Source: Rebecca billardiae RCC1528 (taxonomy: Eukaryota; Protista; Haptophyta). From it: 64,000 bases of DNA. Positions 18,645 to 40,624 of the stretch are shown here, piece after piece. The stretch spans positions 1,240,001 to 1,304,000 of the forward strand of contig OZ251240.1 of the NCBI GenBank assembly GCA_965240325.2. Reading direction: 5' to 3'. The notes beneath the pieces were generated by a model, which had not been told where the DNA came from, did no database searches, and saw nothing but the letters and a program-made list of their open reading frames with translations. The stretch's first letter is position 1; every line of letters begins with the position of its first letter. The position numbers were made by a program, and so were the translations under genes.

Positions 18645-18680
<36 letters not shown>

Positions 18681-20043: not shown

Positions 20044-20075
20044 CGCGCCGACGCCCGCTCGCGTGGCCGCCCTTT

Positions 20076-21198
20076 CAAGGGGAGTCAGGGTACAGCACGT
20101 CCAGTTGGGCTGCAGCTGGAGCTTGGGTCCAAAAGCTTCCCGCGGCGCAGCGGCACTCGCCGCCGCCGCCGCCGTGGAGGGGCGGTTGTGGCGCGCACGG
20201 CGTGAGCCGCTGCGGGCGCTGAGGTGCGCGCGACGGCGGCGCGCCCGGCGGCGCTGCTGTAGGAGGCCACTGCCCTCCTCTCTGCCCCGCGCGCTTCGCT
20301 CGTCGTCGCCGTCGCCGCGCCTGCGACCAGCGCGCACGCGAGCGCCGCACCGCCCGGAAGCCGGGGCAATCTCAGCCGTGACTGCGCATGTGCGTCGCGA
20401 CCTGGTCGGCCCAGCGCGCGAGGCGCGCGCGGGCGAGGCAGGGCCAGTGTGGCCGCGCGCCATGCCGCCTCGACCTTGCGCCAGTGGGCATGTCGCGGGC
20501 CTTGCACCTCTGTCGACAACGTTGACAAACAATGCGGCCCCCAAGCGCAGACGTCAGTGTGCACGATCGAGACAGTAGGCGTACAGACGCGATAGTTGCA
20601 GAGCCTTTTGTGATCATGCGAGTCATGTATCGTCAGTGACTCTCGCCCAGGTCGTCTGCGCGCTGAACTGACGTTTTGACTGAGTGCCTCGAGATCGCCT
20701 CGACGATGGCCCGTGCATTGCTTGAAGACTCGACACCGAGTCCAAGCGGCCAACCAGACACACGTGCTCAGTTCCCTGTTGTACGCTCAGATGGGCTTAC
20801 TTGAGGCGGCATGGCGCGCGGCCACACTGGCCCTGCCTCGCCCGCACGCGCCTCGCGCGCTGGGCCGACCAGGTCGCGACGCACATGCGCAGTCACGGCT
20901 GAGATTGCCCCGGCTTCCGGGCGGTGCGGCGCTCGCGTGCGCGCTGGTCGCAGGCGCGGCGACGGCGACGACGAGCGAAGCGCGCGGGGCAGAGAGGAGG
21001 GCAGTGGCCTCCTACAGCAGCGCCGCCGGGCGCGCCGCCGTCGCGCGCACCTCAGCGCCCGCAGCGGCTCACGCCGTGCGCGCCACAACCGCCCCTCCAC
21101 GGCGGCGGCGGCGGCGAGTGCCGCTGCGCCGCGGGAAGCTTTTGGACCCAAGCTCCAGCTGCAGCCCAACTGGACGTGCTGTACCCTGACTCCCCTTG
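20076..21198. mobile_element. Non-autonomous foldback element, 396-bp TIRs, CAAGGG termini, 7-bp TSD
   Basis: 20076-20471 is the reverse complement of 20803-21198. GCCCTTT lies at 20069-20075 and 21199-21205. Confidence 0.9.
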
Positions 21199-21304
21199 GC
21201 CCTTTCGTGACGGGGTAGCTCCTCACCGGCGGCAGGAACCCCACCCGCACGGCACTGGGCAGATGAGCAAACGGCTCCGGAGCACGTGCCCGCTGCAGGA
21301 GCCA

Positions 21305-22358
21305 GAGGCCGCTCGAGCGACTTCGTGTCTGGCGAGGCAGATCGCGCCAGTGCGTGGCGAGGCAGACGCTCGCCTGCCTCGCCGCTTGGCGAGGCAGCTA
21401 AGCTAGTAACGCCGCGGCCGAACTTTACGAAAGCCAAATGTCTGCCGGTGCGCCGCCCGTCTTTTGCGCACGGTGACAAGGGCGCGCGAGGGCGCTTCCT
21501 CACGATCCCGAAGAGCGCTGCGCGCGGCGTCGCGTTGGCGGCGGCAGCGGCGCTGGGGTGTATCTTGCCCATTCTGCGTGGCGGCGCGCTCTCATGACGC
21601 CTCGGCCGCCGCCACGCCATGCGCGACCGGGCGTGTCGCCTTCTTGACGGGCAGTGCACACGCCCTTGCAAGCGCACAGCCGTGAAGAGCCGAGAGCGTC
21701 CGTCGCGAGCACGCCGCCCACGCGGGATGCGTTATGCTGTCACCGAAGCCACCTTGCGCATGCGCTTCGCCGAGTTCGCCATGCGTTCAGAGCAGTCAAG
21801 ATCGCTGAACGAGAGGATGTCATCGGCTGAAATGCAGGTTAGCAGTGCTCATCGTAGCTGCTACCCATGGTCATCCTGGCTCGCACATGCCAGAGCGCGA
21901 GCACCCAGTGTCATACGAATAGCCCTGGCAACGCATCCCGCGTGGGCGGCGTGCTCGCGACGGACGCTCTCGGCTCTTCACGGCTGTGCGCTTGCAAGGG
22001 CGTGTGCACTGCCCGTCAAGAAGGCGACACGCCCGGTCGCGCATGGCGTGGCGGCGGCCGAGGCGTCATGAGAGCGCGCCGCCACGCAGAATGGGCAAGA
22101 TACACCCCAGCGCCGCTGCCGCCGCCAACGCGACGCCGCGCGCAGCGCTCTTCGGGATCGTGAGGAAGCGCCCTCGCGCGCCCTTGTCACCGTGCGCAAA
22201 AGACGGGCGGCGCACCGGCAGACATTTGGCTTTCGTAAAGTTCGGCCGCGGCGTTACTAGCTTAGCTGCCTCGCCAAGCGGCGAGGCAGGCGAGCGTCTG
22301 CCTCGCCACGCACTGGCGCGATCTGCCTCGCCAGACACGAAGTCGCTCGAGTGGCCTC
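21305..22358. mobile_element. Non-autonomous foldback element, 429-bp TIRs, apparent 5-bp TSD
   Basis: 21305-21733 is the reverse complement of 21930-22358 (one mismatch seen near the tip). AGCCA lies at 21300-21304 and 22359-22363. Confidence 0.85.
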
Positions 22359-22372
22359 AGCCAGGAATCAGC

Positions 22373-23761
22373 ATGGCGGCAAACGAGCTGGAAGGGATGG
22401 AGCCGGTGGCCTCCTCGATCGAGGCGGTCTGCGCGCTCACGCGCGGCGCGGAGGAGGCGACGCCGCTGCCAGAGGTGCTCGAGCTCACCGGGCGCGTCGT
22501 GCACCTCCGCCGCATCAGCCGCATCCTCACCTTCCTCGACCTGAAGGATGCGTCCGAGCTGCCGCCGCCGCCGAGCGCCGAGCGCCTGACCGTCGTGTGC
22601 AAGCAGCACTTCCTCGGCACCGAGCGCATGCAGGAGCTGCGCCAGACGGTGCGCGTCGGCGACGTGGTGCGCGTGACCGGACGCGTCGAGCCCACCGCCC
22701 CCGACGCGGACACCGTGCCCTCCCTCGCCGCCGCAAGATTCGATCTCGTCGCCAAGTGGAGCGCGGAGCGGCCGGGCGAGCAATTCATCCCGCAGCCGAT
22801 GGGCTCGCTGTACTGGTCGCGCGGGAAGCGGGAGCCCTCGTCGGAGGTGTGCAACCGCTTCGTCTCGTGCGGCCGGTGCGAGGTCGTCGGCTGCCGCTTC
22901 GCCCACCGCCTGCCGGACGAGGGTCGGACCGCGTGGGTGAAGGCGGCGACGGCGCGCCGGCTCGAGCGCGCGCAGCTCGCGGCCGACCCGCACGCGAGCG
23001 AGTCGAAGCAGTCGCGCGCGGCGCGCGCGCGGCTCTTCGCCGAGTTCCTGCTGGCCACGTTCGGCGCCGCGTACCTCGACAGCGGCACCGGCGTCATCGA
23101 CGTCGGCGGCGGGCGTGGCGACCTCGCGTTTGAACTGCACACGCGCCGCGGCGTGCGCACAACAGTGATCGACCCGCGGCCGGCGCAGCTGCGGCGGGAG
23201 CAGCACGCGTACATGCGCGCGCACCCGGAGGCGCGGCTGGCGCCGCACATCGCCGAGCCGTTCGACGGCGGCTTCGCCGCGCGCGGCGCCGCGCACGACG
23301 CGCCCGCGCGCGCGCACCTCCTTGAGCGCTGCAGCGCGCTCGTTGGCATGCACCCGGACGAGGCGACCGGCGCGATTGCCGAGTGGGCGGTGGCGCACGG
23401 CAAGCCGTTCGCCGTCGTGCCGTGCTGCGTGTTCGCGCGGCAGTTCCCGGGTAGGGCGCTGCCCGGCGCGTCCGGCGGGGCGCCCGTCAGCTCGTACGAG
23501 GACCTCGTGCACTGGCTGCGCGCGCTGCCCGCCAGCGCCGAGCCGTCCGCCCCGCGCGCGCAGCTCGCCTTCTTGCCGTGCGGCGGCAAGAACCAGGTGG
23601 TCTTCTGGAGCCCAGCAGCCTCAGCAGTCGCGCCGCTCGTCGGCCAGGGGCAGGGCGCGGGGCTCGACGGGGCGTGGGCGCAGTGCATCGAATGCGACGA
23701 CGCGCCCATCGACGGCGGCGGCGGCGGCGGCGGCAGCGGCAGTGGCGGCAGCAGCACCTGA
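22373..23761 (+). CDS. OB-fold + CCCH zinc finger + SAM-dependent methyltransferase-like protein (putative RNA methyltransferase)
   Basis: LTGRVVHLRRISRILTFLDL...VGDVVRVTGRV (OB fold), CNRFVSCGRCEVVGCRFAH (CCCH), VIDVGGGRGDL, VGMHPDEATG, FAVVPCCVF. Confidence 0.8.
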   Translation: MAANELEGMEPVASSIEAVCALTRGAEEATPLPEVLELTGRVVHLRRISRILTFLDLKDASELPPPPSAERLTVVCKQHFLGTERMQELRQTVRVGDVVRVTGRVEPTAPDADTVPSLAAARFDLVAKWSAERPGEQFIPQPMGSLYWSRGKREPSSEVCNRFVSCGRCEVVGCRFAHRLPDEGRTAWVKAATARRLERAQLAADPHASESKQSRAARARLFAEFLLATFGAAYLDSGTGVIDVGGGRGDLAFELHTRRGVRTTVIDPRPAQLRREQHAYMRAHPEARLAPHIAEPFDGGFAARGAAHDAPARAHLLERCSALVGMHPDEATGAIAEWAVAHGKPFAVVPCCVFARQFPGRALPGASGGAPVSSYEDLVHWLRALPASAEPSAPRAQLAFLPCGGKNQVVFWSPAASAVAPLVGQGQGAGLDGAWAQCIECDDAPIDGGGGGGGSGSGGSST

Positions 23762-24304
23762 TGCCAATGCTCACGAGTCAGCGGCACGGTCACAACTCAT
23801 CACAATTCAGCACATCCATGATATTATCACCGTCGTCTCGGCGCCGACCGCGGGCACTTGGGACCGCCTTAGGCCATCATCAGCCATTACTGCTGCTATT
23901 CTTACGACGCGCTTAATAATAAGGCTCGTCGCGCGATCTGTAGCTGTTCTGCGCGCCGCTTATTATTCTGGCCGCCGTTCTCTCTGGCTGAGGCCCCACG
24001 GCCCGGGCCCACCCCAAAACTACTATACCAACCCGGGAGTCGCGTGCGCACGCGCGGCGCGGCCGCGAGCTTGTGGGCAGTGCGCTGCAAGTAGTTCATT
24101 GCTGGCGATGTCAGCCGCCTTCTGCCGTTGCTGCTCACCATGACCAGTGCCCAGGCTGGGGTCACGGGCGTCCAGGGGTGGTTTATTAGTGGTGTCCGGG
24201 AGGAACGGCTTCAAGTTGCACTGCACATCCCGTGTTTTTTGGGCGCACAGCCCCCTGAGCAACCAAGGCCCTGCCACTGAAAGAGGGAGCACGGCCGAAC
24301 TCGG

Positions 24305-24386
24305 ACTCGTGATCACCTCCCTCCCACTGGGAGGTGATCACGAGTGGAGGGAGGTGATCACGAGTCTCGTGATCACCTCCCTCCAC
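24305..24386. repeat. Four copies of CTCGTGATCACCTCCC in forward/reverse/reverse/forward order
   Basis: Directly visible double hairpin, ~40 bp downstream of a CAAGG motif at 24264. Confidence 0.8.
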
Positions 24387-25665
24387 TGGCGCCGCCCGTT
24401 TGGCGCTGGCCGGGATGGCCGCGCGCGTGCGCGAGCGCCCGCCTCGCGTCGCGCGTCCCGCGCGCAGAGCGCGTGCTCGGCCGCGCGCGACGCGGCGGAG
24501 TCGAGGCTGACATGCCCCTGGCCCTCTTCGCGCCGCGCAACGCCGCCCACGCCCATCGCCGCTTGCACGCGCAGGCCTGCCGCGCGGCGGCTTGGGCTTT
24601 TTGGCACAGGCTGGCGGCGGCGCGCCGGGCCGAGGGCTCGGCCGGTGTTGCGCCCCTCGGCCAGGCCGAGACTTGGCGGAGGCGTGGGTAGTGCCATCGC
24701 CTGCCCAGATCCCGGGCCTCGCCGTCAGAGCGTGCACGCGAGGCGCGCTGTCGTGGTCGACAGGTGAGGCGCCGCGCGCTCGCCCTCGAGCGGGCAGCGG
24801 ACATACCGGCAGGCGCGGGCGCACACAGCGGGGCTGTCGAGCTGCTTGCGGCTGGGCAGATCGACGGCGCGTGCACTGGCCCTGGTCTGGTAGGCGTGCG
24901 CGGGTTCGGAGGCCGGTGAACGCTCGGCGCGGACCCACGTGTCTTGCCTGGCACGGTTGCGCGACAGGCGGCTCGGCGGCCAGTCTCGAGGCTGAGTGGC
25001 ATCAGAGCGCTTGCCGGCGTGCTGGCGTGCTCTACCGCCGGGCCGATGCCCACGCCTTGGCCAGGATGCGACCAGCCTCCGCGTCCTCCGCAGCCGCCTG
25101 GAGCCGTCGACCCGCCGCCCAATGGCAACGCGGCCGGCGGGCCGCGCTGTATGATAGCGTCAGCGCGAGAGGGCTGAGTTCGTGAGGGATATCCTAGCAA
25201 TCGAACCGTCTTCCTATTAATATTAATATATTGAAACGGGCTCCCTCTATTCCAAGCGGGTACATTTGAATACGCCCGCTATCAATAATAGTGCAGGCCG
25301 TGAGTGAGGACTGAGGCGACTACAGGCTGGTCTCACCAAGAACTTCCCGAGCGCTGCCGACGTGTCCGCGCTCGCGGCGGGCGAGCACGGGGAATCGGCT
25401 GAGTACGATCGCTCGCATCGTGGGTCTAGTCCCCGACAAAATTGTCCGCGGAGCCGCGCGCGTCGCTCACCTCGTGCCCGGCGCTCCGCCGCGGAGGCGC
25501 CGTCACAGTGGTTTTCACAGTGGGCCGAGCAGTCTGAAGTGGCGCTGAACTGAGGTTTCAAAGAAATAGAGGGGGTAGAACCGAAAGCTCTCCCGATTAA
25601 TATGGTTTCAGACTGCTCGCTCCGGAACACCGGGCTTCAGCTTCGTCACGCCCTCAGGCGCGGAG

Positions 25666-26731
25666 ATGCCCTGGTTGCTCCTCGCCCTGCACCTCGTCGC
25701 AGCCGCGCTGACTCTCGGCTCGTGCAGTGCACGCCCGACGTGCAGCCCGGGGCTTGAAGCCATGCGACCACGCAGAAACTCCACCGACCAAACCGACGAC
25801 GCGAGCGGCGCCGGCGATGGTGTCTCCAGGTGCGCCCGCGACCGGGCCTGAGCGTCGAGCCCCAAACTTGCCCGCGTGGCGCGCGACTGCCCAACACAGA
25901 GATACTGCGCGTAATTTCGTGTCCCTAAAGTATGGAGCCAGCGGGGCAGTGTGCTTACCCACCGCTCGAACCTTGAGGGACACGAATCTCACCCGTTTTG
26001 GCGCCCCCGAACCGCCCTCGTTTCGTGCGCACTACAGGTTGGCGGCGAACTGGTGGGTTGGGGATATCAACATGGCAAAGGCGCTGGCGGAGCACCTGAC
26101 GGGCAACGGCACGCCCCACGACATCATCAAAGACCGAGCGCGGCATGTCCCCGGTGTCGTAGACGGACGGATGGTGTACTACGTGAAGCCGGCCGGGCAG
26201 CCGAGCTATCTATGCCCACCGGCTCCTGTTTTCCAGCTCGAGCAGTTGTTGGCGCCCCTCTACGAGGATGGGGCTGTCGAGGAGCGCGCGCTCGCTGCAT
26301 TGCTCGCACGCGACGAGTTCGCCGAGGTGCTGCGGTCTGTCGCGCCCACGGTGGGCGTGTCGCTCGATTCGTCGGACGGCGCGCACGGCACGGAGCTCGA
26401 GCCTCGGGCGAGAACACTCGGCCTCATCCTCGCACACAAGCCGTTGCGCGTGAATGACCGGCGAGACGCGGGCGGCGGGCTCGTGAGCGCGTATGCGCTT
26501 CTCGAACGAAAGCTCGGCGTCGGGCACCAACTCGCGCCTCCCGCCCCGCCGCCCCCTGCTCCGGAGGCACCGCCTCCAGGATGGATGAGGGCTGCGGCCG
26601 CCTCGCGGCGCGCCAGCGCCCGTCGTCCTCGCCCCACCGTCGTCCGCCACAAAACGTCGTCCTCCGAACTCGCCGACTGGGCGCCGATGCAACAGCGCGC
26701 CGACAGGATGAGGATACGTATAGTCGCGTAA
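25666..26731 (+). CDS. Element-borne hypothetical protein with signal-peptide-like N-terminus (probable intron ~25830-25899)
   Basis: MPWLLLALHLVAAALTLG joins in frame, via a GTGCG...CACAG intron, to the 25727-26731 ORF. Confidence 0.45.
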
Positions 26732-27019
26732 TAATCTGCTATGTAATAAGTACGTACGTAAATTACATACAGTAATCCGGCGGCGAGCGCTGCTACTAGC
26801 AGTAGCAGGACTCACAGTGACAGTGTCACTGCCCCGAGTCATACAGACACAGCAGTGCCCGGCGCCGTGGCGCGCTGCTCACCTATATGTATATATAATA
26901 TATCTGTGACTACTGATATGATGACACGTGACGATATATATATCATCGATGACGCGCTAACTGACAATCATTGATGATACATCGTAGTCGAAGTCACTCG
27001 TCGTCAGCATGATCGCCGC

Positions 27020-28681
27020 TCACAGCAAAGGGGTCTGCACTCTGCCGCCCGCGCTGGCTGCATTGCCGAAGCACGCCTGCACGCCCTTCGTGATCAAGTT
27101 GAGGTGCTCGACATCAGCACCGTCATTGACCTCGTCGTCGAGCAGGCAGCGCTGCTGCTCGCTCTCGATGTCTGCGAAGAACGAGTCCACCATGCGCTCA
27201 TCAGCCTTCACCTCCTCTGCTGACTGCCCTTCGCCATCAGCCTCGTCGACGTCTCCAAGCGCAATCGCCTTGGCAAGCGACTCACGATGCGTCAGCATCG
27301 CCTCGGGCGCCGGCACGCTGAGCTGGGCGCCGGGCGACTTCGCCGCGACCGTAGCGAGCTTGGTGCGCAGGTTGGCCCGCTGGCTCTCCACGGTGAGCGA
27401 CGTGAACATGTGATCGAGAGCCGTGCGTGCAAAGTTCGGGCCGCGCACGCGCATGTACTTGTCCACGAGGAACTCGAAGAGGGCCAGCTGCTCCGCCTCG
27501 GCAGGCTTGGGGTCGGGCAGCGTGGCAGCGAAGAGCGCTGCGCACTCCGCACTAGCCAGGATGAGCTTGGACGCCTCGAGCATGATGTCGCCCCTGACGA
27601 GTGCGATGTGGTCCCGAGTGAGGACGGCGACGACGTGCTCCTCCATCCTCCACACGAGCATGAATAGCTCCTTGCGTGGGAGGTAGAGGGCAGAGTCGTG
27701 CACGTTGCGCCTGAGCGTACGCACCGACGGCAGATCCCAGAGGGACACGACATCGCTGCTCGCGAGCCCGTTCGCCTTGAGCCACGCGAGCCAAAAGGGC
27801 CCCGCTTCCAGGAGCGCCTTGGTACCGTGGCAAGCGGCAGCCTGCACCTTGCGCATGAGCCAGCCGGTGAGGTAGTACAGGAGCTGGGCGCGGAGGTCCT
27901 TCACATCCGGCGAGCAGGTCGGTGGCACCTGGACGGGTGGGTGGGCGGCGAGCTTTTCGCACGTGGCCGCGAAGAGCGCCTCGTCCAGCTCGTCCAGGAG
28001 CGCGACGTGCAACATGGGCCGAGCGTTCACAGCTGACAAGCTCCGGATCGCCTCCTCTGCGCGCGCCGCGTGCTCCTGGATAAACGCCTGTCGTGTCTCA
28101 CGCAGCTCCGAGTGGAAGGCCGAGCGCACGTTGCCGATCGCCGTGGTTGACTTCGCGCGGTGAGTCGCCATCACGTCGACCATGGCCCGCACGCGCTCCT
28201 CGAGCTCGTCCCCGAGCGCCGAGGCCAGCTTGTCGAAGCGGGCTGGCGTGGGATCACCCATCAACATCGCCGCATGAGAACTCGTCCGGCAGAACTCGAC
28301 GGCGCGCTTGACGATGAGCGACCTGTCGCCTAGCTGCTTCAGCGTCGACTCGACGAAGCCGCTCACCGGCGCCAGCTTCACACGCTGGGGCGGATCGAGG
28401 TAGCGCTTGTACGCGAGGGCGATCTGCCGCTGGCTGAGCTTGTGCCGCACCTTGATGAGCTTCAGCTCCAGCACGCGGTCGATCTGCGGCAAGCCGTTGG
28501 CGTTCCCCTTCGTCTTCCTCTTCTCCCACTCGGCGCTCTTCGCCTGGAATACGGCGACGAGCTCCGCCCGTGCGGCATCGGTGAGCATGGCTGCGGGGAT
28601 CAGGGGCGGACGACGCCAGTCTTTGCCAAGTGCGGCGGCGCGGAGCTGGGGCAAGCCGTCCGGACTCTGAAGCCCGGTCAT
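27020..28681 (-). CDS. Element-borne 553-aa protein with a motif resembling P-element transposase C-terminal/transposon accessory domains
   Basis: Long intronless ORF with coding-like codon use. LLYYLTGWLMRK...RRN..ALYLP..ELF..VWRME...KYMRVRG recalls the YIAGY...RGGL.P pattern. No DDE core recognised. Confidence 0.6.
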   Translation of the reverse strand: MTGLQSPDGLPQLRAAALGKDWRRPPLIPAAMLTDAARAELVAVFQAKSAEWEKRKTKGNANGLPQIDRVLELKLIKVRHKLSQRQIALAYKRYLDPPQRVKLAPVSGFVESTLKQLGDRSLIVKRAVEFCRTSSHAAMLMGDPTPARFDKLASALGDELEERVRAMVDVMATHRAKSTTAIGNVRSAFHSELRETRQAFIQEHAARAEEAIRSLSAVNARPMLHVALLDELDEALFAATCEKLAAHPPVQVPPTCSPDVKDLRAQLLYYLTGWLMRKVQAAACHGTKALLEAGPFWLAWLKANGLASSDVVSLWDLPSVRTLRRNVHDSALYLPRKELFMLVWRMEEHVVAVLTRDHIALVRGDIMLEASKLILASAECAALFAATLPDPKPAEAEQLALFEFLVDKYMRVRGPNFARTALDHMFTSLTVESQRANLRTKLATVAAKSPGAQLSVPAPEAMLTHRESLAKAIALGDVDEADGEGQSAEEVKADERMVDSFFADIESEQQRCLLDDEVNDGADVEHLNLITKGVQACFGNAASAGGRVQTPLL

Positions 28682-29686
28682 TTCAGTCCGGGAGGTGAGC
28701 TTTCGGTTCTACCCCCTCTATTTCTTTGGAGGTTTCGTCGGGGTTTCCGCAGTCCGGCGGGCTTCTGCCGCTTCGGACGCCCAGGCGGCATCCATCACCA
28801 CGAGGTCGGCCACGCGCGGACCTGGCCCGCGCGGAGGCGGAGCATGGCGCACTGCTTGATGACTGCGCCCGCGCGAGCCGTTCCATGATCGCTGTGGTTA
28901 CTGCCAAAGCCCCTGCCTCTGTTGGTGGGACCTCGCCAGATGCACTTGTCACTTGCGCGCCGCTCGAACGGCTCCGAACGAACACGACGAGCACATTGCA
29001 CTTCGTCGCAGTTGGCTCACTCGCAGCAGGTATTCGAATCTGTCGCAGTGGAAGCGGGGGGTGCGAGAGCCTACGTACGTCTGTCAAGGGCAGCCGCACG
29101 CTTCAACATTGCGAAGGAGTTCCGCCCTGAACAGTGCGGCGGCAAGGCGGGTTGAGTGTGCTCCAAGCAACATCGTCAGGCACTGATACAGGTGGGGAGG
29201 CGCAGGAAGGACGTTGCAACGAGCGCGATGAGGCCCACATACCTCGACAGCATGGGAGAGACGCGCTGTGGGACATGAAGACACCTGTCACTCATGCCAG
29301 GTCCCACGTTGACCCGCAACGCTCGGCGGCTTCTGCGGGCGAGAACAACGACGCAATGTTTCAGTGCTACAGCGAGGGTGGGGATGAGGAGAGGGGCTTG
29401 GGGTACGGGCAACCGTGTGAACAACACCACTAGGGGTCGCACGGACCGAGATCGCGCGCCGTTCATTTTTTGCAGGGGGGTGGGGGTTTGAATCTCGACA
29501 ACGGCGGGGCGGACAGAGGCGTGCGACCCCTCGTCGGAGAGCTCTCGATGCGGCCGATTTAATGGCGCCATCGAGAATTTTCCGCAGACGCAGTGGGACT
29601 GAAAAAAAAAATCCAAAGCCTCGGGAAGTTCTTGGTGAGACCAGCCTGTAGGCGAGGGGACCGCGTCACGAAAGAGTGTGGAGGTG

Positions 29687-30829
29687 ATGGTGACGCTCAT
29701 CATGCTCGCGCTCGCGCGCCTGCCGATGGTATCGGCCTGCACGACAGCGATGCCAATGGTCTTGCGCGCCTTAGGCTCCGGGTCCGCATCCGACGCCGAG
29801 CTGCGTTGCCAGACCCCGGCGCTCACCGGCCTAACGACGGACTACTGCGTCTCCGACACTCATCTGCGTCTCCTGCTGTGCGGCACGCCGAAGGGATCGG
29901 CGACCACCACGGTGAGGCTCATGATCATGCAGCTCGGCCTTCAGGATGAAGTGCGCGCGTTCAACGCCGCACAAGGGATCGCATCAGGCACTTGGCCTCA
30001 CAATTACGTTCACGAGGTGTTCCACTTGCAGCCCGAGCACCAGCTGCAGCTGCAGTCTCAGAAAAACGGCACACTGCTGTGCCGGCAGGAAGGCTGGCTG
30101 TGCATCAAGTTCGTGCGCAACCCGTTTGACCGCGCGATCTCATCCTTCCTTGCTACCGTATCGAAGTTGCACATGCCAGCCGGGCAGGTGGAGCAAACTT
30201 GGGCGTGGCCGGCGCTCACCGACACGGTCGGCGAAGCAGCGCTGCGCGCTGGCGACTGGTCGTTCGCTGACTTCGTGCGGGCACTCGAGGTGACCGCTGC
30301 CGCAGCGAGGCGTGCGGGGAGACCTGCCGCCTCCCTCATGGGGACCGGGGTTGCACGGCATGTGTTGCCGCAGTCGTTGGCGCGCCGGAAGGGCCGGTCA
30401 AGTACGCACGCCCCTGGCGACGAGCAGCAGGAGGATCCGACGGGCGACGATGCGGACGGCATGCACCTCGTGCCTATCGAGAGCTTGGCGACAAGGCTGC
30501 GCGCACTGGAGAAGCAGTTCCGACCCGATCTGCGCCTGTCCGCACACGCGCTCAACCTGAGCTCCGGGCACTGGAATTCAAGGTCGCACCTGCCGAAGAG
30601 CGAGGCAGCTGCCAATGCCATGCTGCCGCCAGTCAACGTGACCACCGCCGCAGTGCAGCTGTGCTCTGGTTTCACGCGAGGCCACTCGTGCTCGAAATTT
30701 CCTGCGGGCGCATACGATGCGATGCAGCACAGCGGGTGGGCCAGTGTCTGGAGTAAGGTTGGCTGTCTCTTCGCGCATGACGTTGAGCTCTTTGCAAGGT
30801 CCTGCGCGGCGCAGCAACCTGAATTATAA
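29687..30829 (+). CDS. Sulfotransferase family 2 (carbohydrate sulfotransferase-like)
   Basis: CGTPKGSATT (5'-PSB-like), KFVRNPFDRAISSF (3'-PB), SFADFV, HVLPQS. N-terminal signal or anchor. Confidence 0.78.
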   Translation: MVTLIMLALARLPMVSACTTAMPMVLRALGSGSASDAELRCQTPALTGLTTDYCVSDTHLRLLLCGTPKGSATTTVRLMIMQLGLQDEVRAFNAAQGIASGTWPHNYVHEVFHLQPEHQLQLQSQKNGTLLCRQEGWLCIKFVRNPFDRAISSFLATVSKLHMPAGQVEQTWAWPALTDTVGEAALRAGDWSFADFVRALEVTAAAARRAGRPAASLMGTGVARHVLPQSLARRKGRSSTHAPGDEQQEDPTGDDADGMHLVPIESLATRLRALEKQFRPDLRLSAHALNLSSGHWNSRSHLPKSEAAANAMLPPVNVTTAAVQLCSGFTRGHSCSKFPAGAYDAMQHSGWASVWSKVGCLFAHDVELFARSCAAQQPEL

Positions 30830-31014
30830 CATCACTTGGCGATTGACCGCCGGCCGCGCCGGGTGCTGCCTGCTGGGCTGCTGGCCGTGCTGCCGCCGCT
30901 GCCGTGCGTTACGACGCCGAGCGGCCGTGCGGCCGCTGGGCCCGCACGTGTTGAGTGTCTAGAGTGACGACGATACTGGGTGACGACGCGATCGAGCCAC
31001 GTCACGCGTCGTCA

Positions 31015-31045
31015 TAATATATATATATATATACTACTGTTATTA

Positions 31046-31112
<67 letters not shown>
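31015..31112. repeat. (TA)n microsatellite
   Basis: Direct observation. Confidence 0.95.
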
Positions 31113-31115
<3 letters not shown>

Positions 31116-31180
31116 GCAGATGCTGAGCTCATTGTTCATCCGCAATTTGACGGACAGCACGGTTACGATTGTCACCGTTG

Positions 31181-32551
31181 TCAGCTGCTGCTGTCCTTGA
31201 AGATGGTCGCGCTCCACACGATGGAGAGAGCGGTCGCGGACATGATGCCCACGTCGGTCAGCGCGAACGCGATCGTGATGCTCACCTCGCGCACGTCGTC
31301 GGGGATGTCCGCGTCGTGGTTCAGCCGGTACACGCAGTTCACGTAGCTCGCGCCGCCCATGCACCCCACCCAGACCATCCAGACCAGCATGGCCGCGTAG
31401 CCCGCGTCGCCGCGGTGCGCGAGCCAGCGCGTCTTCGCCTCGACAAACCAGAGCGCGCAGTTGAGCGCCTGCAGGAGCGTGAGGACCCACACGCGGCGGA
31501 TGCGCACCACGTTGATCGAGAAGCGCGCCAGCGTGACCCCCACGTTGTAGCACGCCCACGCCAGCGAGTAGGCCGAGCGCTGAAGCCACGAGCGCCGGTC
31601 CATCGGCCGCTTCGTGTCCGCGTCCACGCAGCCCGGGTAGATCTCGTACTCGAGCGCGAATACGCAGACGAGGTTGAGCGCGAGGAACCACGTGTGCGAC
31701 AGCGCCCTCCGCGCCGAGGTCGCCGCGGGCGGGACCAGCGGCGCCGACGCCCCCGCCACCTCCGCCACGTCCGCGTCGAGCGAGAGGTACCGTTCTGAAT
31801 CGTCCGAGCCCGACGCGTCCGCGCCGCCGCCGCGCTCGCGCAGCAGCTCGGGGACGTCGCGCACGATGCGGCGCATGCAGAGGAGGTAGAGGCAGGCGCC
31901 CATGCCGAGCGAGGCGACGCTCGACACGTCCGAGGCGCCCGAGCGCGCGAAGCCGAGCACGAGCAGCGGGCCCACCAGTCCGGAGAGTCCGGTGCCCATG
32001 CCCCACAGCCCGAGCGAGGGCTTGAAGCAGCGCGGCAGAACGCCTAGGTGCGTGACCTCGCCGATGAACTGCGAGAGGCCGAGCACGGAGGTCCCGCCCA
32101 GCGCGATCGAGATGCCCAGACCGCTGCGCACGCGCGTCGAGAGCGCGACCATCACCACCGACACGAGCTGGAGCACGATAGTGATCGTGATTCGCTGCTC
32201 GAACGACAGGCCGCGCCGGAGCAGCACGACGTTGAGCAGCGCGCCGACGAGGCACGCGGCCGTGGGCGTGAAGAGGAAGGCGGGCGTGAGCATCGGCATC
32301 TCGAACACGTCGTCGGTGAGGTGCTGCGCCGCCGCCGCGACGAAGCAGAACGGCAGGTTGTTCAGGATCGCCGCGAGGATCACCGCCACGCGCAGCGACA
32401 CGCGCCGCGCGGGCGCCGGCTCTCCAACCGACGAGACGGCCTGGACGAGGCGGCTCGGCTCGTGCGACGCGATGGGCTCTACGAGGCGGCTCGGCTCCTC
32501 CTCCCCCGAGACGGCATCGACGAAGCGGCTCGGCTCATCGAGGGCCGACAT
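31181..32551 (-). CDS. CLN3: CLN3/battenin (Btn1)-family membrane protein
   Basis: ILNNLPFCFVAAAAQHL, IGEVTHLG, WGMGTGLSGLVG, VFALEY, YNVGVTLAR, MGGASYVN, REVS. Multi-pass hydrophobic. Confidence 0.85.
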   Translation of the reverse strand: MSALDEPSRFVDAVSGEEEPSRLVEPIASHEPSRLVQAVSSVGEPAPARRVSLRVAVILAAILNNLPFCFVAAAAQHLTDDVFEMPMLTPAFLFTPTAACLVGALLNVVLLRRGLSFEQRITITIVLQLVSVVMVALSTRVRSGLGISIALGGTSVLGLSQFIGEVTHLGVLPRCFKPSLGLWGMGTGLSGLVGPLLVLGFARSGASDVSSVASLGMGACLYLLCMRRIVRDVPELLRERGGGADASGSDDSERYLSLDADVAEVAGASAPLVPPAATSARRALSHTWFLALNLVCVFALEYEIYPGCVDADTKRPMDRRSWLQRSAYSLAWACYNVGVTLARFSINVVRIRRVWVLTLLQALNCALWFVEAKTRWLAHRGDAGYAAMLVWMVWVGCMGGASYVNCVYRLNHDADIPDDVREVSITIAFALTDVGIMSATALSIVWSATIFKDSSS

Positions 32552-32960
32552 CGGCGCTGCTGCCGCGGCTCCCGTGCGCTCAATCGTCCATGCTCAGTGG
32601 ACTGTGGTTGCCGTGACTGGGATGGCGGCCAAGTTATCGTAGTATGCACAGTACCCCCATAGTACTTGTACTTGTGCAATGACAATGGTATTACGACGGC
32701 CTTGGGGCTTGGGCCGAGAAAACAGATAACCTCCGAGCCGGCCGCACTGGGAGTCTGGGAGTGGCAGTGGCCGTGGGGTGCCCTGGCCAGGCTTGCGCCA
32801 GTCGTGACTCGTGCCAGTCGTGGCGGCTGCTAGTAGTGCTATATATTAATAAGGTTTAGCTCATCAGCTATGTATATATTTAACGACGTGGCAGCATCGG
32901 ACAAGCGTCAGGCTCAGAGTGCAACAGACACATAGAATGCGTCCGCGCCTTCCGTCCAGG

Positions 32961-33365
32961 TCAGACAGTGCGCCACCCGCAGCCCTGCCCCCCTAGTGGC
33001 CCTACGGGAGCGGGGCCGGGATGGAGCACCGCCTCGGCCTGGGGCACGCGGCGGCGACGGCAGATGCCGCCGCGGCCGAGCGCCTTCCGGAGCACTTGGA
33101 TGAGGGTGAGGTCGTAGTCGATGTCGCCGCCCGCCGACCTAGCGGCGAGCAGCTCCGGCAAGCGGCAGCCGCGGCTGTCGCCCCCGTGCGCCCGCGTGGG
33201 CGCCTGGATGAGGATGAGGTCGTAGTACGCGTCGCCGCGCGCCGGCCAAGCGGCGCGCAGCTGCAGAAGAGGGGCTTGGAGAGTGAGCGCGCCGCCTAGC
33301 GCGCTCTGGGCGATGAAGCAGATGAGGTGGTAGTCGATGTCGCAGCCCAGCCCGCCGGCGGGCAT
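32961..33365 (-). pseudogene. Gene fragment with three degenerate 108-bp (36-aa) repeats, abutting a (TA)n tract
   Basis: DIDYHLICFI / DAYYDLILIQ / DIDYDLTLIQ at 108-bp spacing. Confidence 0.35.
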
Positions 33366-33368
33366 ATA

Positions 33369-33408
<40 letters not shown>
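33364..33408. repeat. (TA)n microsatellite
   Basis: Direct observation. Confidence 0.95.
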
Positions 33409-33412
<4 letters not shown>

Positions 33413-35611
33413 CTGATGCAGAGTGCACGGTACCTGGCTGGTATACTCTTCGTAGGTGGGTCCCTGGCGATTTTCCAGCGGTCTTTTAAACATTTACCGG
33501 GTTCTCTGGCCGGATTTCTTTCGCGCGGGGCGCGGCTCGGGAAAATCGCCGGGCCGCCGGCCGAGGTCCGATCTGAACGCTCCCGACGATGTCGGAGTGC
33601 CTCTCCAGCGCGACCGAGCCGCCGTGTGTCGGGTAGACTACTGCCAACACCTATCGCGCGCTCCAGCGCTTTGCGCGTGCTCACGGATGGGATCCGTGGT
33701 CACACATCCCCCGCCTGGCACGTGCCCGCATGTTTGACTCTCGCCCGGCTAGACGCGTACAGACAACTTGAATCGATCGGCAGGTGTTCGACCCGTGCCT
33801 TCGAGCAGGGTCACTTTTCGCTACAGGCGGGTCAGGCGACGGGAGGCATGGGTCACCATCAGGCATGTGCATACTCTTGACGCTCCCGCCATCTTGAGCA
33901 GCTCTACGCACCGTGAAGGTGACAATTGGGCTGCGCGCAAGCTGCTCGTGAGAACGCACGACAGCCAGCCCCGGGCTCTCGGGGAGCCATGTGAGCGATT
34001 GGCGACTTCCGAGAGGGCGTGTTTGGTGGGGGTTGGTACCAATCATCGACCAGCAGGCCTGGGATGGGTGCACTGAGGACTTGGGATGCTGAGAAGCCGC
34101 CGCGATGTGCATCGAGCACGCTGACTTGCCATCCGTGTGCACGATCAAGCGCCAGGAAGATCAGCAGGGCCTTTGACAGCGGCAGCAGGCGCTCAGCGAT
34201 CCTTCCCTATGCCGAGTGTGGGCATAATATGCGGTGCTCGAGCGTGGTCGCAGGATATGGGTCCATTCTTGACAGAACGCGGTCGCGTTGACAGGCGCGG
34301 GTGCCACCCCACGCTGTTGCTCCTGCCATCGGGTGGTCCCACTCGTTCCGCTTGTTATCTGCGAAGACTCGTACTCAGCAAATCTACGGCTAGGCGTGGT
34401 CGACCCCTCAGACGCATGTCTGATGATTGCCCAGCACGTTCTCGTCGTCACGTTGGGTGTACTTGAGCGAGCGGAAGCCGCAACGTGATGGCTAGGCCAG
34501 CAGCTCAACCATCTGACGTCTCGCCGGCCAACTGGCTGAGTGCTCTCAGCCTAGCAGCAGCGTCGGTGAACCTATCGTATTGCTGCCTGGCAAGAAGATT
34601 GTAGGAGGTATCGTCCACGGCATGGGCTGCAGCTGCGGTAGTCGTGGACTGGTGGCGGCCTCACGCGGGTGGGCATACGACGACCGGTGACACGCGGAGT
34701 ACGAGCACGCGGAGCACGGAAGCCGCCGAGCGCGGCAAGCTCCGGCGGTGGCGTTGGCTGATAGTCCAGCCTCGACGGCGGAGGGCTCCCGTGTGACGAC
34801 GGTGGCATGCTCGGTGGCGGGCGATGATGCGTGCCTCGGCATGCAGCCCGCCACAAACACTGCCACTCGCAGGCAGTCCGGTTGCGGCCCGGTTTGCCTG
34901 TGTCCGCGTCGCTCGGCGCCTATTCGATGACCCAACAAACGTACCCACATATCGGAACGAATTTGAATATATAGTGAGCCACATCCACGGTCAATATAAA
35001 GTGGGTAACCGTCGTTCTATATACGGGTAATTGGTATATACAAAGTGGGTAATCTGCTCGATCTTGCTGTAGTTTGTTGGAGGTATCCGCGCACAGCATA
35101 GAGCCCCACTCTTTGCTTCATAAAATGGTTCGGTCGGGTGTCAACGGTTGCCAATAAGTCGTTCCGATCGCATGTCGCCATCTAGCCACCATAACCATCA
35201 AGTAACGCTTCGCAAAATCTCTATGTGACACTAGTGGCGCGGCGCGCGCGCGCTCGGCCGCGCGACGGCACGCGGAGTAGGTTTTGAGGTCGAAACTTTT
35301 GCTCCGCCCCGATGGGACGCATTTATAGCGTCGATTCTGGGTGAGAGACGAAAGCTAGGACGCCATTCTGAGTGCGCCAGAACATCGCCCCAGTTGGGAG
35401 GGACCCACCTACTCTTCGCCATCCGCCATCGCACTCGCTTCATTCACGGTTATATATATTCACTGATTCACGCGAGGGTGCCCGCCCGGATGGCGGATTG
35501 ATACTCTCTCCTCTGAGTCTCTCGCGGGCCGAGCGATCGGATGCGGAGCAGCAGCCGGGCGCAGCCTCCGGAGCAGTGAGAGACGAGAGTACCAGACAGG
35601 TCAGCTGCTAC

Positions 35612-36936
35612 TCAGTCAGCTGCGGCAGATGATTGCGAGCCCCCTAGCCGTGCTGCCTGTGCCGCGCACCACGCGTTGCAGTGGGGCTTGTGCACCTTCC
35701 ACGAGCTGCGCAGGTGCTCACGCGAGCAGAAGACCGCCACGTGGCACCGCTCGCACTTCTTGAGACCACGGCCTGTCCGTGCGCAGGCGATGCAGCACTG
35801 GGAGACCACCTCGCGCTCTCCAGCTGCCACAGCCAGCGCATGGCACGCTCGATCTCTGAGGCTGGGATCGAGCTCTTGGCCACGGCGCAGCAGCCGCGCG
35901 CCCTCCTCCACGTCACGCTCCACCAACGCACCCACCAGCATCAGTGCTCCCAGCGCGAGGTGTGCATCTGCGCTCCCGCCGTCAATAGCCAGACGGAACC
36001 AGCGCGTCGCCTCGCTGAGATCGATCGACACGCCCTCTCCATACGAGTAGTGCATGCCCAGATGGTACTGCGCTGCCGCATCGCCCTGCTCTGCTGCCAG
36101 CCGGTACCAGCGCACTGCCTCGCCCCAATCCTGCTGCACACCCTTGCCGTGCTCGTAGCACAGGCCCAGATTGAACTGCGCTTGCACATAGCCCTGCTCA
36201 GCCGCCAGCCGGTAACAGCGCACCGCCTCGCCCCAATCCTGCTGCACACCATTGCCACGTGCGTAGCACACGCCCAGATTGCACTGCGCATCAGCATCGC
36301 CCTGCTCGGCCGCCAGCCGGTACCAGCGCACTGCCTCGCCCCAATCCTGCTGCACACCCTCGCCATGTGCGTAGCGCATGCCCAGATTGTACTGCGCGGG
36401 CGCATCACCCTGCTCGGCCGCCAGCCGGTACCAGCGCACCGCCTCGATCCAATCATGCTGCACACCCTTGCCTTGATCGTAGCACACGCCCAGATTGCAC
36501 TGCCCTTGCGCAAAGCCCTGCTCGGCTGCCAGCCGGTACCAGCGCACTGCCTCGCCCCAATCCGGCTGCACACCCTTGCCTTGCGTGTAGCACGCGCCCA
36601 GGTTGCACTGCGCTTGCGCAACGCCCTGCTCGGCTGCAAGCCGGAACCAGCGCGCTGCCTCAGCCCAATCATGTTGCACACCGTTGCCTTGATCGTAGCA
36701 CGCGCCCAGATTGCACTGCGCTTCTTGCCTGCCACGTAGACGTCACCCACCCTCACCTGCGCATCGGCAAAGCCGCGCTCGGCGGCGAGGGTGTACAGGC
36801 GAAAGGCTTCGCGCTCGTCCTGCGCGATGCCGTCGCCAACCTCAGCTCGCTCCGCCAGAAGGAACGTCGCACGCGCGTCGCCGCGCCCCGACTTGCGCCA
36901 GAGGAGACCGACCGCCGCGGAAGCGTTCGTCGCCAT
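35612..36936 (-). CDS. SEL1-repeat protein with C-terminal MYND-like finger; frame break near 36716-36756
   Basis: At least six near-identical 36-aa repeats WGEAVRWYRLAAEQGDADAQCNLGVCY. C-terminal CIACARTGRGLKKCERCHVAVFCSREH...HKPHC. Confidence 0.88.
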
Positions 36937-37225
36937 TCTGTTTTCTACCGGGATGACTCGGCGTGCGTCACAGCGTCAGCCCTCGTCGGCGGAGCTTGTT
37001 CCCAGAAATTGTTTTGCCGTTATTGGCGGAAACGGGAAATAAGCGCAGCACGACTCGTCCGTAGTCTCCGGACGGACGCACCCAGCGCGCACTGGCACTC
37101 GGGTCGACGCGGGAGCAAGCTGCCAGAGAGCAACCGTTCGCCACCAGCGTCAACGCCATGAGCCCAGCCGAGGCCGCTGCCGCGCCCGCCCGACGACGCC
37201 CGACTCAAGGGCCCGCTCTCATGAT

Positions 37226-38324
37226 TCATTCCTTGTACAGGTCGTATCTGATGATGTGCGCGAGCACCGCCGCGGGGATCAGCCCCTCGACCATCGAGTA
37301 ATTCCGCCCGCTCAGCTGCTCCAGCTCGCGCTCGCCGAACTTGTGCTGCTGCGGCACGTAGCTCGACGAGCGCTTGGTCAGCGCCTCCGGCGGCTGCTGC
37401 GGCACGTACGTCAGCCGCTTCCGGATTTCTGACGACGACATCTCCTGGCTGGCGAGCGTGAACGCGCCGCCGGGCGCCTCGAGCTCGATCGCCTTCGGAG
37501 GCAGCTCCTGCGCGCCGAGCTCGTACCCAGGCCTGCGCGCGGCGTGCGCGCGGGGCAGCGGCGACGGGCCGGCGCGGAGAGTCACGCGCGGGCGCGCACG
37601 CGAGCGCGCGCGTCGAGAACGCTCGACGTGCGCGAAGCCACAGCACCACGGGCGAAGCAAAAAGCGCCGCGCCGTCGCGGCGCCGGCCGGCCACGGCCAC
37701 GCACCTGCGGATGACGATGAACGCAATCTCGTCCCACAGCCGCTGGCCCTCGTCCCACTCCTTGAGGTGCGGCACCAGGTCGGACCTGGGCAGCGCCGCG
37801 GCAGCCAGCAGCGGCACGGCCGCGCAGGCGGCGCGGGGCGGCAGCAGCGGGGCGGCGAAGTCAGGCGCACAGCACAGTCCGCAGCTTGGCTCGGGCGCGG
37901 CAGGGCGGCGTGGGCGTGCGCGCCCCGCGCACCCGATAACAAAGAGCGGCTCGATGTCGGGCCGCTTCCTATTGAGCATCTGCAGCAGGTCCCACGTGGG
38001 CAGCGCCTTCTCCTCGTGCAGCTCAATGTCTGAGACTTTGACGGGGAATCCGGAGCCGAACGTGGTGTTGACGGCGAGGTGGCACATGAGCAGCCGGTCG
38101 AGCACGCTGCGCTTGAGGGACGGCTTGTCAGGGCGATTGCCGCACGGCACGAGCCAGACCTCCGCCGCCGCGCCGCAGTGCACGATCTCTGCCGCGCACT
38201 TGAGGTGCGCGTCGGTGATCGGATCAAAGCTGCCGCCCAGCAGGGCGACGCGCTTGCGCGGGATGCGTGGGCTCGAGGTGTCCCTCCCGGACTGTCCGGT
38301 CAGCATCTCGGCGAGCTGCTGCAT
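37226..38324 (-). CDS. Cytidylyltransferase-fold NMN/NaMN adenylyltransferase (NadD-like), spliced
   Basis: ALLGGSFDPITDAH, VWLVPCG.RPDK, FVIG|SDL, IVIR|RPGY, MSSSEIRKRL, V..HII...LY. Confidence 0.85.
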
Positions 38325-38555
38325 CGTGGCTGGGGGCGCGTGCCGGGCTCAGCGAGCCGCCCGGAGCACGCCGAGTGAGCACCCGCACGGCAGCCCTCCC
38401 GCCCAGTCGGCAGTCGTGGACGTCAAGCGCCAGCAACCCAGGAGGTCGCAGCGACCCAGCGACGACCCGAAAAAGACAAAGATGGGACTTCGTCGTCAAA
38501 GCAATTCGCATTTCGCGAGCACCCGCCGACGACGATTTGCCGAGGAGCACCGCGC

Positions 38556-39761
38556 CAAGGGCGGTAAGCTTCGACAGTACCACTACAGACGAATCAGGAG
38601 AGCTGCGCCCTCGTGCCTGTGTCTTTAAATCATAGAATTGGTAAGGGCTGTCAACTCCCAGTGGCGCCGAGTGGCGGAGGTTCCGTGCCCCTCAACTCGT
38701 GCGGCCTCGCGGCGCAGCGGCTAAGTCTCCTGGGGCGCCGCCCTGGAGGGCGCGTGGGGTGCGCACGCCGCGGGCTCATGCGCCCGCGGCAGCGGCCGCG
38801 GACACGGCGCGCGTGGTTGGTCGCCTGCTAGACAGCACGTAGTACCCTCCCACGCCGCGCGCCGCGCTCGCCGGTGCCCTCGCCGCGCCTCAGGCCAGCC
38901 GCGCACGCGCGCCGCGCCAATGGCCAGCCGTGGCCACGAGCCAGCCGCCGGCGCGCGCGCGGTGCGCGGTGCGGTCGGCGCGGGTCGGGCGCGCGCCCGG
39001 GGCGAGGCTCGCGTATGATGGGCGCGCGTCATGCCGCCTCGCGCCGCCGCGCTGACGCCCGCATGGGTCGGCGCGCACGCGTTTACATGCTGTCGAGTGT
39101 GCATTGCCATGTTTGAAAATGCTCACGTTGAGACGATCATGGGACGGCAGCGACGCGTGATAGACAAGCGCAGACCACTAATATGTGCACGGCCAGCCTC
39201 ATGTCATGGCAAGCAAGTCCCCGAGTGCCCGCGTTCGTCGCACTGATGCGCTCACAACCACTTATCCAAGCTCATTTCTGATGGCCGAGGAATGCTCGAC
39301 GAGCACTCTTCAGCAGCCGCGTGCAACGTGATCAAGCTCGTGGGTGGCGGCGCGAGGCGGCATGACGCGCGCCCATCATACGCGAGCCTCGCCCCGGGCG
39401 CGCGCCCGACCCGCGCCGACCGCACCGCGCACCGCGCGCGCGCCGGCGGCTGGCTCGTGGCCACGGCTGGCCATTGGCGCGGCGCGCGTGCGCGGCTGGC
39501 CTGAGGCGCGGCGAGGGCACCGGCGAGCGCGGCGCGCGGCGTGGGAGGGTACTACGTGCTGTCTAGCAGGCGACCAACCACGCGCGCCGTGTCCGCGGCC
39601 GCTGCCGCGGGCGCAGGAGCCCGCGGCGTGCGCACCCCACGCGCCCTCCAGGGCGGCGCCCCAGGAGACTTGGCCGCTGCGCCGCGAGGCCGCACGAGTT
39701 GAGGGGCACGGAACCTCCGCCACTCGGCGCCACTGGGAGTTGACAGCCCTTACCGCCCTTG
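38556..39761. mobile_element. Non-autonomous foldback element, 416-bp TIRs, CAAGGG termini, 7-bp TSD; left arm interrupted by a nested insertion
   Basis: 38556-39048, minus a 77-nt insert, is the reverse complement of 39346-39761. ACCGCGC lies at 38549-38555 and 39762-39768. Confidence 0.9.
38566..38639. mobile_element. ~74-nt dispersed repeat, copy 2, nested in a TIR arm
   Basis: Absent from the right arm. GGTAAG is duplicated at 38563-38568 and 38640-38645. Confidence 0.8.
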
Positions 39762-39821
39762 ACCGCGCATCGTGGCGGCCTCAGGTTGGCCAGCAGGGCG
39801 GACAATTGCGCGCGAGCAGCC

Positions 39822-40624
39822 ATGGGTGGCCTGCGCGACGCGCTGCGCTCGCTCGCCGCGTCCGCGGCGGCGGGGCTGGCTGCGACGCCGGTGATCATCG
39901 CGTTCACGGACAACGTCGCCACCATCGCATGCTGCGAGGGCCGCTCGATGCAGCCGACCATCAACCGCATCGGCGGGATGTCCGCCGTTGTGCTGCTCGA
40001 CAAGTGGAGCGGCCGCAGCAGCCGCTTCGACCGCGGCGACGTGGTCGTGCTCAACTCGCCGACGCACGACGGCAGCATGGTGCTCAAGCGCATCCTCGCG
40101 CTCGGCGGCGACTACGTCAAGCGCGCCGACGGGCGCGGCGAGCCGATTCACGTGCCCAAGGGCCACTGCTGGGTCGAGGGTGACAATCCCGCGGTCTCAC
40201 ACGACAGCAACGCGTTCGGGCCGGTGCGCGCGCCCGCGCCGCGCAGCGAGCGCCGCCAAGGGCCTCCGCGTCGCGCGGGCGCGGGCGGCGTGCGCCAACC
40301 CGCACACGCCGACTGTGCCGCCGCCCGCTCAGCCGCGCCTCCCCGCCGCGGCGCCGGCAGGTGCCTGTCGCGATGGTGAACGCTCGGGTCGTGTACAAGC
40401 TGTGGCCTCTCTCGGAGGTGGGCCCGGTGGAGCGGCTGTCCGCGCCTCCGAGCCGGGTGTGGCACCCAGGGCGGGACTATGGCGCGCTGACGCACCGGCC
40501 TGGCCCACCACCGACGTCGACGTCGCCTGCGTTCACCCACGGGCGCTTGGGCGGCGCTGCTGACGTGGGCGCGCTTGCGCCGAGTGTGGAGCAGCCTGCT
40601 GCGACGGCAGGCACGTGGAGATGA
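39822..40624 (+). CDS. IMP2: Mitochondrial inner membrane peptidase (S26, IMP2-like); one intron ending at 40360
   Basis: EGRSMQPT (catalytic Ser), RGDVVVL.SP, LKRILALGGD (Lys), VPKGHCWVEGDN...DSNAFGP|VPVAMV...KLWP. Confidence 0.88.

Follow-up and report, generated by a model that had tools for sequence, protein, structure and literature searches.

A group of CAAGGG-ended, non-coding hairpin transposons in the haptophyte alga Rebecca billardiae

The window analysed here, a stretch of 64,000 nucleotides from Rebecca billardiae RCC1528 (contig OZ251240.1, positions 1,240,001 to 1,304,000, assembly GCA_965240325.2), raises the question of what moved two hairpin elements that lie in it, and whether the reading frame that opens at the inner end of their arms is the start of a gene. 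Element 1 (20076-21198, 1123 bp) and element 2 (38556-39761, 1206 bp) both terminate in CAAGGG...CCCTTG and consist of two long arms, or terminal inverted repeats (TIRs), separated by a loop. A first-pass annotation of this DNA took them for internally deleted members of a foldback lineage related to P and Galileo. The present analysis gives a partly different answer. Both elements are real, recently mobile, protein-less transposons, and the explanation preferred here, with a probability of about 0.6 for the account as a whole, is that they are cut-and-paste DNA transposons with a two-TIR or foldback layout, neither coding nor autonomous, which would be mobilised in trans. What is new is the census of their families, the homology of the arms together with their fixed boundary, the pattern of arm variants, the rejection of the open reading frame (ORF) and a single P-like candidate locus for the enzyme. 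Taken together, the CAAGGG group is an ordinary but well-preserved set of non-autonomous long-TIR transposons.

Two hairpins and their families

Element 1 is flanked by the target-site duplication (TSD) GCCCTTT (20069-20075 and 21199-21205). Its left arm (20076-20471, plus strand, 396 nt, GC 77%, tip CAAGGGGAGTCAGGG) is 100% complementary to the right arm (20803-21198, minus strand), and the loop between them (20472-20802, 331 nt, GC 57%), into which runs a 38-codon frame (20462-20575), is unrelated to the loops of the other families. The left arm finishes with the inner-end block CATGCCGCCTC (20461-20471, plus strand; complement at 20803), which lies within a block of about 24 nt kept in four families. 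Element 2 is flanked by ACCGCGC (38549-38555 and 39762-39768). The outer tip of its left arm, CAAGGGCGGTAAG (38556-38568, plus strand), is cut off after 13 nt by a 71-nt foreign insert (38569-38639) bordered by the 6-bp duplication GGTAAG (38563-38568 and 38640-38645); minus this insert the element measures 1129 bp, the standard length of its family. The remainder of the left arm (38640-39048, plus strand, 409 nt, GC 79%), with CATGCCGCCTC at 39030-39040 and its complement at 39354, is 100% complementary to 39346-39754, and the tips complete the pairing. The loop (39049-39345, 297 nt, GC 58%) receives a 71-codon frame (39031-39243), and the right arm, tip included, occupies 39346-39761 on the minus strand. 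The coordinates, ends, exact duplications, arms of about 400 nt and inner-end motif reported by the first-pass annotation were thus all confirmed, and these two are the only CAAGGG...CCCTTG pairs with a 7-bp TSD in the window.

Both elements belong to a much larger group. In the host genome (72 Mb, 41 contigs, about 68% GC) at least six related families with approximately 290 copies were counted. The searches with 40-nt tips, which gave complete genome-wide lists, returned 44 occurrences on each strand for family 1 (element 1) and 49 on the plus and 44 on the minus strand for family 2 (element 2), with none for the control patterns. Two 15-mer tip classes, CAAGGGSRGTMAGGG and CAAGGGWRGTMMGGG, occurred 145/135 and 150/154 times, again with 0 for the control pattern; here positions were read from at least 100 tip places each, and what is said below about a master copy refers to the tip places listed. 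The family tips are GAGTCAGGG (family 1), CGGTAAGGG (families 2 and 3), TAGTAAGGG (family 5), AGGTCCGGG (family 6) and TGGTCAGGG (family 7), and CAAGG forms the first bases of all of them. Paired tips are nearly all 1.07-1.2 kb apart, and a 613-bp derivative of family 2 has been amplified to at least nine copies. Some copies reach 100% identity, and the pairwise median is 97.7% for family 1 and 95.7% for family 2. The alga carries, then, a long-hairpin DNA transposon group that is young and probably still active. As for its distribution, the large low-numbered contigs C2, C4, C6 and C9 do not appear among the tips and copies listed and every other large contig does; these four may be of different origin or free of the group.

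The mobility signature was tabulated in 47 complete copies with their flanks. A perfect 7-bp TSD was found in 38 of them and two more were off by one or two bases; the remaining copies either carry a further small insertion right at the end of the element (L026, L027, L052) or have flanks that do not match. The duplication length is consistently 7 bp, as had been predicted, and a TSD of 8 bp was seen in none of the 47. The target bias is mirror-symmetric. Within the TSD, position 1 is rarely T and position 7 rarely A, position 2 is rarely A and position 6 rarely T; in the flanks, A/T is over-represented at -3 and +10. The insertion target is weakly specific and weakly palindromic. These data also bear on the assignment of the group to hAT. 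The terminal consensus of hAT is YARNG, which the tip CAAGG fits, and the weakly palindromic target would suit this assignment as well. On the other hand, the 8-bp duplication of hAT is replaced here by 7 bp, and the hAT dimerisation domain was matched only once in the genome, on contig 17 and far from the listed tips, where a stop interrupts the 89-codon frame. Membership in hAT is the most improbable of the explanations considered.

Members of the group also insert into each other. In the pairs of 2.2-4.2 kb that were read, a family-5 or family-6 copy lies inside a family-2 arm at a distance of 47-56 nt from the tip and is flanked by a 7-bp duplication of its own (CCCCAAC, GGGGCCC), and this suggests a preferred target inside the arm. 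In one of these pairs a pogo-like fragment, described below, has in addition entered the family-5 loop at a TA. Examples of members inside each other's arms are L041:2587-3791, L042:2603-3817 and L046:392-1499, and at C1:945401-946589, judged by coordinates only, a family-7 copy sits within a 112-bp family-5 shell.

Arms, loops and the frame at the inner boundary

The arms of elements 1 and 2 had been described as different sequences. Local alignment scores compared with those of dinucleotide shuffles correct this description, because the arms of families 1 and 2 align over their full length with a score of 127 against a shuffle mean of 34 (standard deviation, sd, 4.8; z = 19.5) and are diverged homologues. 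The scores of family 1 with families 5 and 6 are 105 and 89, that of family 2 with family 6 is 125 and that of family 5 with family 6 is 83 (shuffle means 30-35). Homology is clear in five of the six family pairs (z = 13-20), and the direct comparison of families 2 and 5 is weak. Between families the arms keep 55-62% global identity, their length stays at 396-417 nt, and in all four families read they end at the same homologous place, the block GC[G/A]CG[C/T]C[A/G]TGCC..C.CG. This inner block (15-19 of 24 positions) and the 15-nt tip (11-13 of 15) are the best-kept parts of the arm. The loops behave in the opposite way: their GC content is 57-58% versus 77-79% in the arms, and those of families 1 and 2 are not alignable (local score 22 against 19.4 for shuffles, sd 2.2, equalled in 54 of 300).

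Since the arms are homologous and share their inner boundary, the ancestor of the families already was, to judge from these alignments, a hairpin with the present layout, after which constraint acted on the arms or else the loops were exchanged. The inner block itself is taken here for a cis element, for instance a putative transposase binding site or the boundary of arm-to-arm copying.

The variants within families indicate how the arms are maintained. Among private variants, found in one copy only, 108 are one-armed and one is two-armed, and therefore resident copies do not undergo arm homogenisation. Variants common to several copies are often two-armed, and the same family-1 variant can be present in both arms or in one depending on the copy (9 and 4 copies at column 60, 8 and 5 at column 259, 10 and 3 at column 371). 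This pattern is the trace that would be expected of arm-to-arm copying in propagating lineages, for example through template switching in the repair that follows excision. As shared one-armed variants exist, perfect pairing of the arms is not necessary for transposition. A fixed arm geometry in deeply diverged families, together with this arm-variant pattern, offers clean natural data on how long inverted repeats are kept up.

The inner block contains an ATG, and the first four residues of the frame that it opens, MPPR, are still read from arm sequence. On this feature rests the proposal that the elements are internally deleted copies of autonomous foldback P-like transposons, in which each TIR would hold promoter, 5' untranslated region and transposase ATG and the loop would begin with an N-terminal exon. 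The block with its ATG is kept in families 1, 2 and 6, it is better conserved than the arm average, and MPPR stands in frame in both window copies. Moreover, the peptides quoted for the two elements, of the form MPPR...KRR..CAR, read as described. Nevertheless, the KRR..CAR that they share corresponds to an 11-nt DNA match (CAAGCGCAGAC) at chance level, as the loop-to-loop score given above indicates, and an indel destroys it in the 99%-identical sister copy L032.

The frames themselves give no better support to that proposal. All of them stop inside the loop. From its two sides, family 1 gives 38 and 14 codons, family 2 gives 71, 51 or 101 and 17, family 5 gives 100 and 29, and family 6 gives 52 and 60, and in shuffled loops such lengths are reached by chance (P = 0.28 for the 38 codons of family 1 and 0.11 for the 71 of family 2). 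A Pfam search of the arm and loop frames gave no match. The ATG is present in both arms and the two sides of one element lead to unrelated peptides; past the arm-encoded residues M/V-P-P/A-R, nothing is common to the two sides or to the four families. Furthermore, the ATG has become GTG in both family-5 arms and ATA in an older family-6 copy. Loops that cannot be aligned between arms that can are the reverse of what a conserved N-terminal exon would leave, and by this reasoning the inner-block ATG is not a start codon; it appears to belong to a conserved cis block, beyond which frames stay open by chance. The idea of a transposase gene beginning inside the TIR can be set aside, and an origin of the elements by internal deletion from such copies is very unlikely.

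The source of the transposase

According to the preferred explanation, one old hairpin ancestor would have given rise to all the families counted above, each copy being laid out as two GC-rich arms of about 400 nt around a loop of about 300-380 nt. A transposase supplied in trans would recognise the conserved CAAGGGNRGTMMGGG tip and probably other blocks of the arm, the inner one included, cut at CA/TG and insert the element by a 7-bp staggered cut into a weakly palindromic target, which for elements 1 and 2 would have been a site a short distance 5' of a host start codon. Occasional arm-to-arm copying would keep the arms of a lineage alike where the lineage multiplies, not in static copies, and the loops would be replaceable filler.

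Regarding the kind of enzyme, P-superfamily elements reportedly end in 5'-CA...TG-3' with the terminal consensus CANRG. The CAAGGG group shows such CA...TG ends in all families and a 7-bp TSD, and the N-terminal THAP zinc finger of the superfamily, which binds sites in the ends, was not found by the genome search (E <= 1). Foldback and Mutator-like element (MULE) relatives have duplications of about 9-10 bp, and the arms of Foldback (FB) are made of tandem repeats. Elements of Drosophila FB and of the Mutator/Foldback type such as Tm1 (PMC3169594) share with the present ones the hairpin with long inverted arms and a short middle, but the 7-bp TSD and the unique-sequence arms separate the CAAGGG group from them, and a Foldback/MULE assignment was rejected on the duplication length. 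Dada, with a TSD of 6-7 bp, no TIRs and small-RNA genes as targets (PMC3706591), was also discarded, as the elements described here have TIRs of about 400 nt and diverse targets.

Within the P superfamily the duplication is 8 bp in P and 7 bp in 1360 and Galileo (PMC3698922), and Galileo has TIRs of 0.3-1.2 kb, two-TIR copies and chimeric copies without matching TSDs (PMC3573991). On comparison, the layout found in R. billardiae closely resembles that of the Galileo two-TIR non-autonomous copies of Drosophila (PMC3573991, PMC3698922). Both make a 7-bp TSD, consist mostly of their TIRs, which are several hundred bp long, form more than one subfamily per genome and have copies of about 1-2 kb without coding capacity. 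In both, too, the 7-bp flanks of a minority of copies do not match (9 of 47 in the present set; in D. mojavensis, 12 chimeric copies). However, transposase-bearing copies can be traced in Galileo and none were found here; Galileo TIRs range from 18 to 1250 bp, whereas here arms of 396-417 nt and their boundary are fixed despite 55-62% identity; and the present host is a GC-rich alga without a detectable THAP domain. BuT5, a miniature inverted-repeat transposable element (MITE) of a divergent P element, is similar in being about 1 kb long, uniform and non-coding, with internal sequence unrelated to its master, and it is thought to be mobilised in trans through common ends (PMC3698922). Unlike the CAAGGG group, it has 3-bp TIRs with sub-TIRs, TSDs of 8-9 bp and a known P-element master. 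More generally, the group is non-coding and uniform and has many similar copies with TIRs and TSDs, as is the case for MITEs and other non-autonomous TIR elements. The usual length limit of MITEs is about 600 bp, which 1.1 kb exceeds.

Membership of the P superfamily is decided by the transposase, as autonomous members with the same ends encode a P-type enzyme whose split RNase H fold contains an inserted GTP-binding domain. A search with Pfam domain families over the whole genome returned a single match to the N-terminal part of the P-type RNase H domain, one that clears the Pfam cut-off (PF21787, C21:1533970-1534365, minus strand, E = 5e-6). The frame contains, about 270 codons further downstream, a weak match to the C-terminal part (PF21789, C21:1533082-1533159, E = 0.29), and the order and spacing of the two are as expected if the GTP-binding insertion domain lay between them. 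This P/THAP9-like frame on contig 21 is the candidate source of the transposase and the most likely enzyme, although its chance of being the right one is set slightly below even. The same holds for the classification of the CAAGGG group as P elements, which falls just short of an even bet. The relationship to P and Galileo put forward in the first-pass annotation is therefore retained as far as the 7-bp TSD, the CA...TG ends and the Galileo-like layout are concerned, and it is weakened by the position of the only P-like frame, away from the listed tips of families 1, 2 and 7, and by the missing THAP match.

Several results weigh against mobilisation in trans by this enzyme. No autonomous copy with CAAGGG-type tips was found among the tip places listed. 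Of the listed tips of families 1, 2 and 7, the one nearest to the contig-21 frame (C21:1533082-1534365) is about 100 kb away from it, and the PF21789 match of this frame stays under the cut-off. THAP (PF05485) gave no candidate in the genome at E <= 1 in an exon-by-exon, six-frame search in which the control genomes were without THAP, so that its absence is unproven. Finally, the frame is open over 1322 codons, a weak sign of an intact gene that says little because long frames arise by chance in GC-rich DNA, as does a 1189-codon frame of low-complexity junk beside a solo tip in L064, which was dismissed as a coding candidate.

The other candidates for a master copy did not withstand inspection. 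The listed tip pairs wider than the standard, whether read or explained by their coordinates, are all nested or composite, and they give no support to the claim that the present copies are internally deleted forms of longer ones. An apparent 12.6-kb element on contig 5 (C5:1081203, C5:1093805) consists of two separate 1.13-kb elements, and the family-1 solo tips L061-L065 are accounted for by a remnant of 65 bp, by the end of a contig and by two copies that break off beside host genes. In a scan of metagenome data a degenerate tip pattern was matched 65 times, each time singly; this is approximately the number estimated for chance, and none of the matches was homologous to the arms.

It could also be that the mover is not P-like at all and is an uncharacterised DDE enzyme that has no Pfam model, or that the autonomous partner is absent from the assembly or collapsed in it. 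The lack of a physical link between the P-like frame and any listed tip would agree with this, as would the THAP result. Furthermore, at least ten tips of the variant CAAGGGCGGTCAGGG stand unpaired, with no similar tip in their vicinity (e.g. C5:3032994, C11:224038, C14:977322, C23:669704). They may be the ends of longer or unlike-tipped elements, which makes them possible master-copy candidates. Against this stand the 7-bp TSD with CA...TG ends, the product of the 1360/Galileo branches of the P superfamily (PMC3698922), and the fact that the genome does hold a P-type RNase H frame with the spacing expected for the insertion domain. This alternative is considered unlikely, and should the contig-21 frame not be the enzyme, a transposase invisible to Pfam or missing from the assembly would take its place.

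Returning to mobilisation by a P-type enzyme, a more specific and more doubtful version is that the approximately 290 hairpins are the non-autonomous swarm of a single-copy, THAP-less P-type transposase, with arms re-copied from each other in the cycle of transposition and repair. If the first part were true, the group would provide an early record, outside animals, of a P-type transposase together with its non-autonomous elements. If the second were true, it would explain how arm length and boundary stay fixed despite the drift in sequence. The transposon literature on Tisochrysis lists hAT, Mariner, Harbinger and PiggyBac and no P elements (PMC5963040).

Neighbouring genes and further insertions

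Both elements of the window lie beside host genes. A PPR-repeat gene (17170-20043, minus strand; PPR_2, E = 7e-82) has its first in-frame ATG 32 nt off the left end of element 1, and the ATG of an S26 signal-peptidase gene (39822-40376, plus strand; Peptidase_S26, E = 4e-15) is 60 nt off the right end of element 2. Because they are located so close upstream of host start codons, the elements may affect the expression of these genes, and they could cause inversions. An Rfam search of the window found no RNA gene. At 25320-29651 the window also contains a 4.3-kb element with the unrelated ends CTACAGGCTGGTCTCACCAAGAACTTCCCGAG and inverted copy, which does not belong to the CAAGGG group.

The unit of about 71 nt that interrupts the left tip of element 2 was found in, or exactly at, CAAGGG tips in several independent copies: besides 38569-38639 of the window, these are L021 (about 2608-2667), L026 (just right of 2619), L027 (2620-2656) and L052 (2623-2659), and L027 and L052 have a related 37-nt flank in common. 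It looks like a mini element that targets CAAGGG tips.

Another insertion was observed in a family-5 loop at L044:3199-4087 (G000:C1), where a nested fragment at a TA starts with TA|CAGGTCGCTGC. It encodes ...LLLDNHSSRY...EEPNTSHFLQ and, after an intron-like gap, ALDQYNHKF..., and has no Pfam match; by eye it corresponds to the last catalytic region of pogo/Tigger-type DDE transposases. The terminus CAGGTCGCTGC recurs 10 nt past the right end of a family-2 copy in L049.

Lastly, some family-1 copies are incomplete. Those at L062:9496-9934 and L064:112-552 are cut at the identical base (element position 439, 43 nt into the loop) and run into differing host DNA, which is an M1 peptidase/LTA4 hydrolase gene for the former and an RCC1 gene for the latter. 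The 65-bp remnant at L061:751-815 (G000:C8:637750-637814) consists of 42 nt from one tip fused to about 20 nt from the opposite tip and looks like the product of an abortive gap repair.

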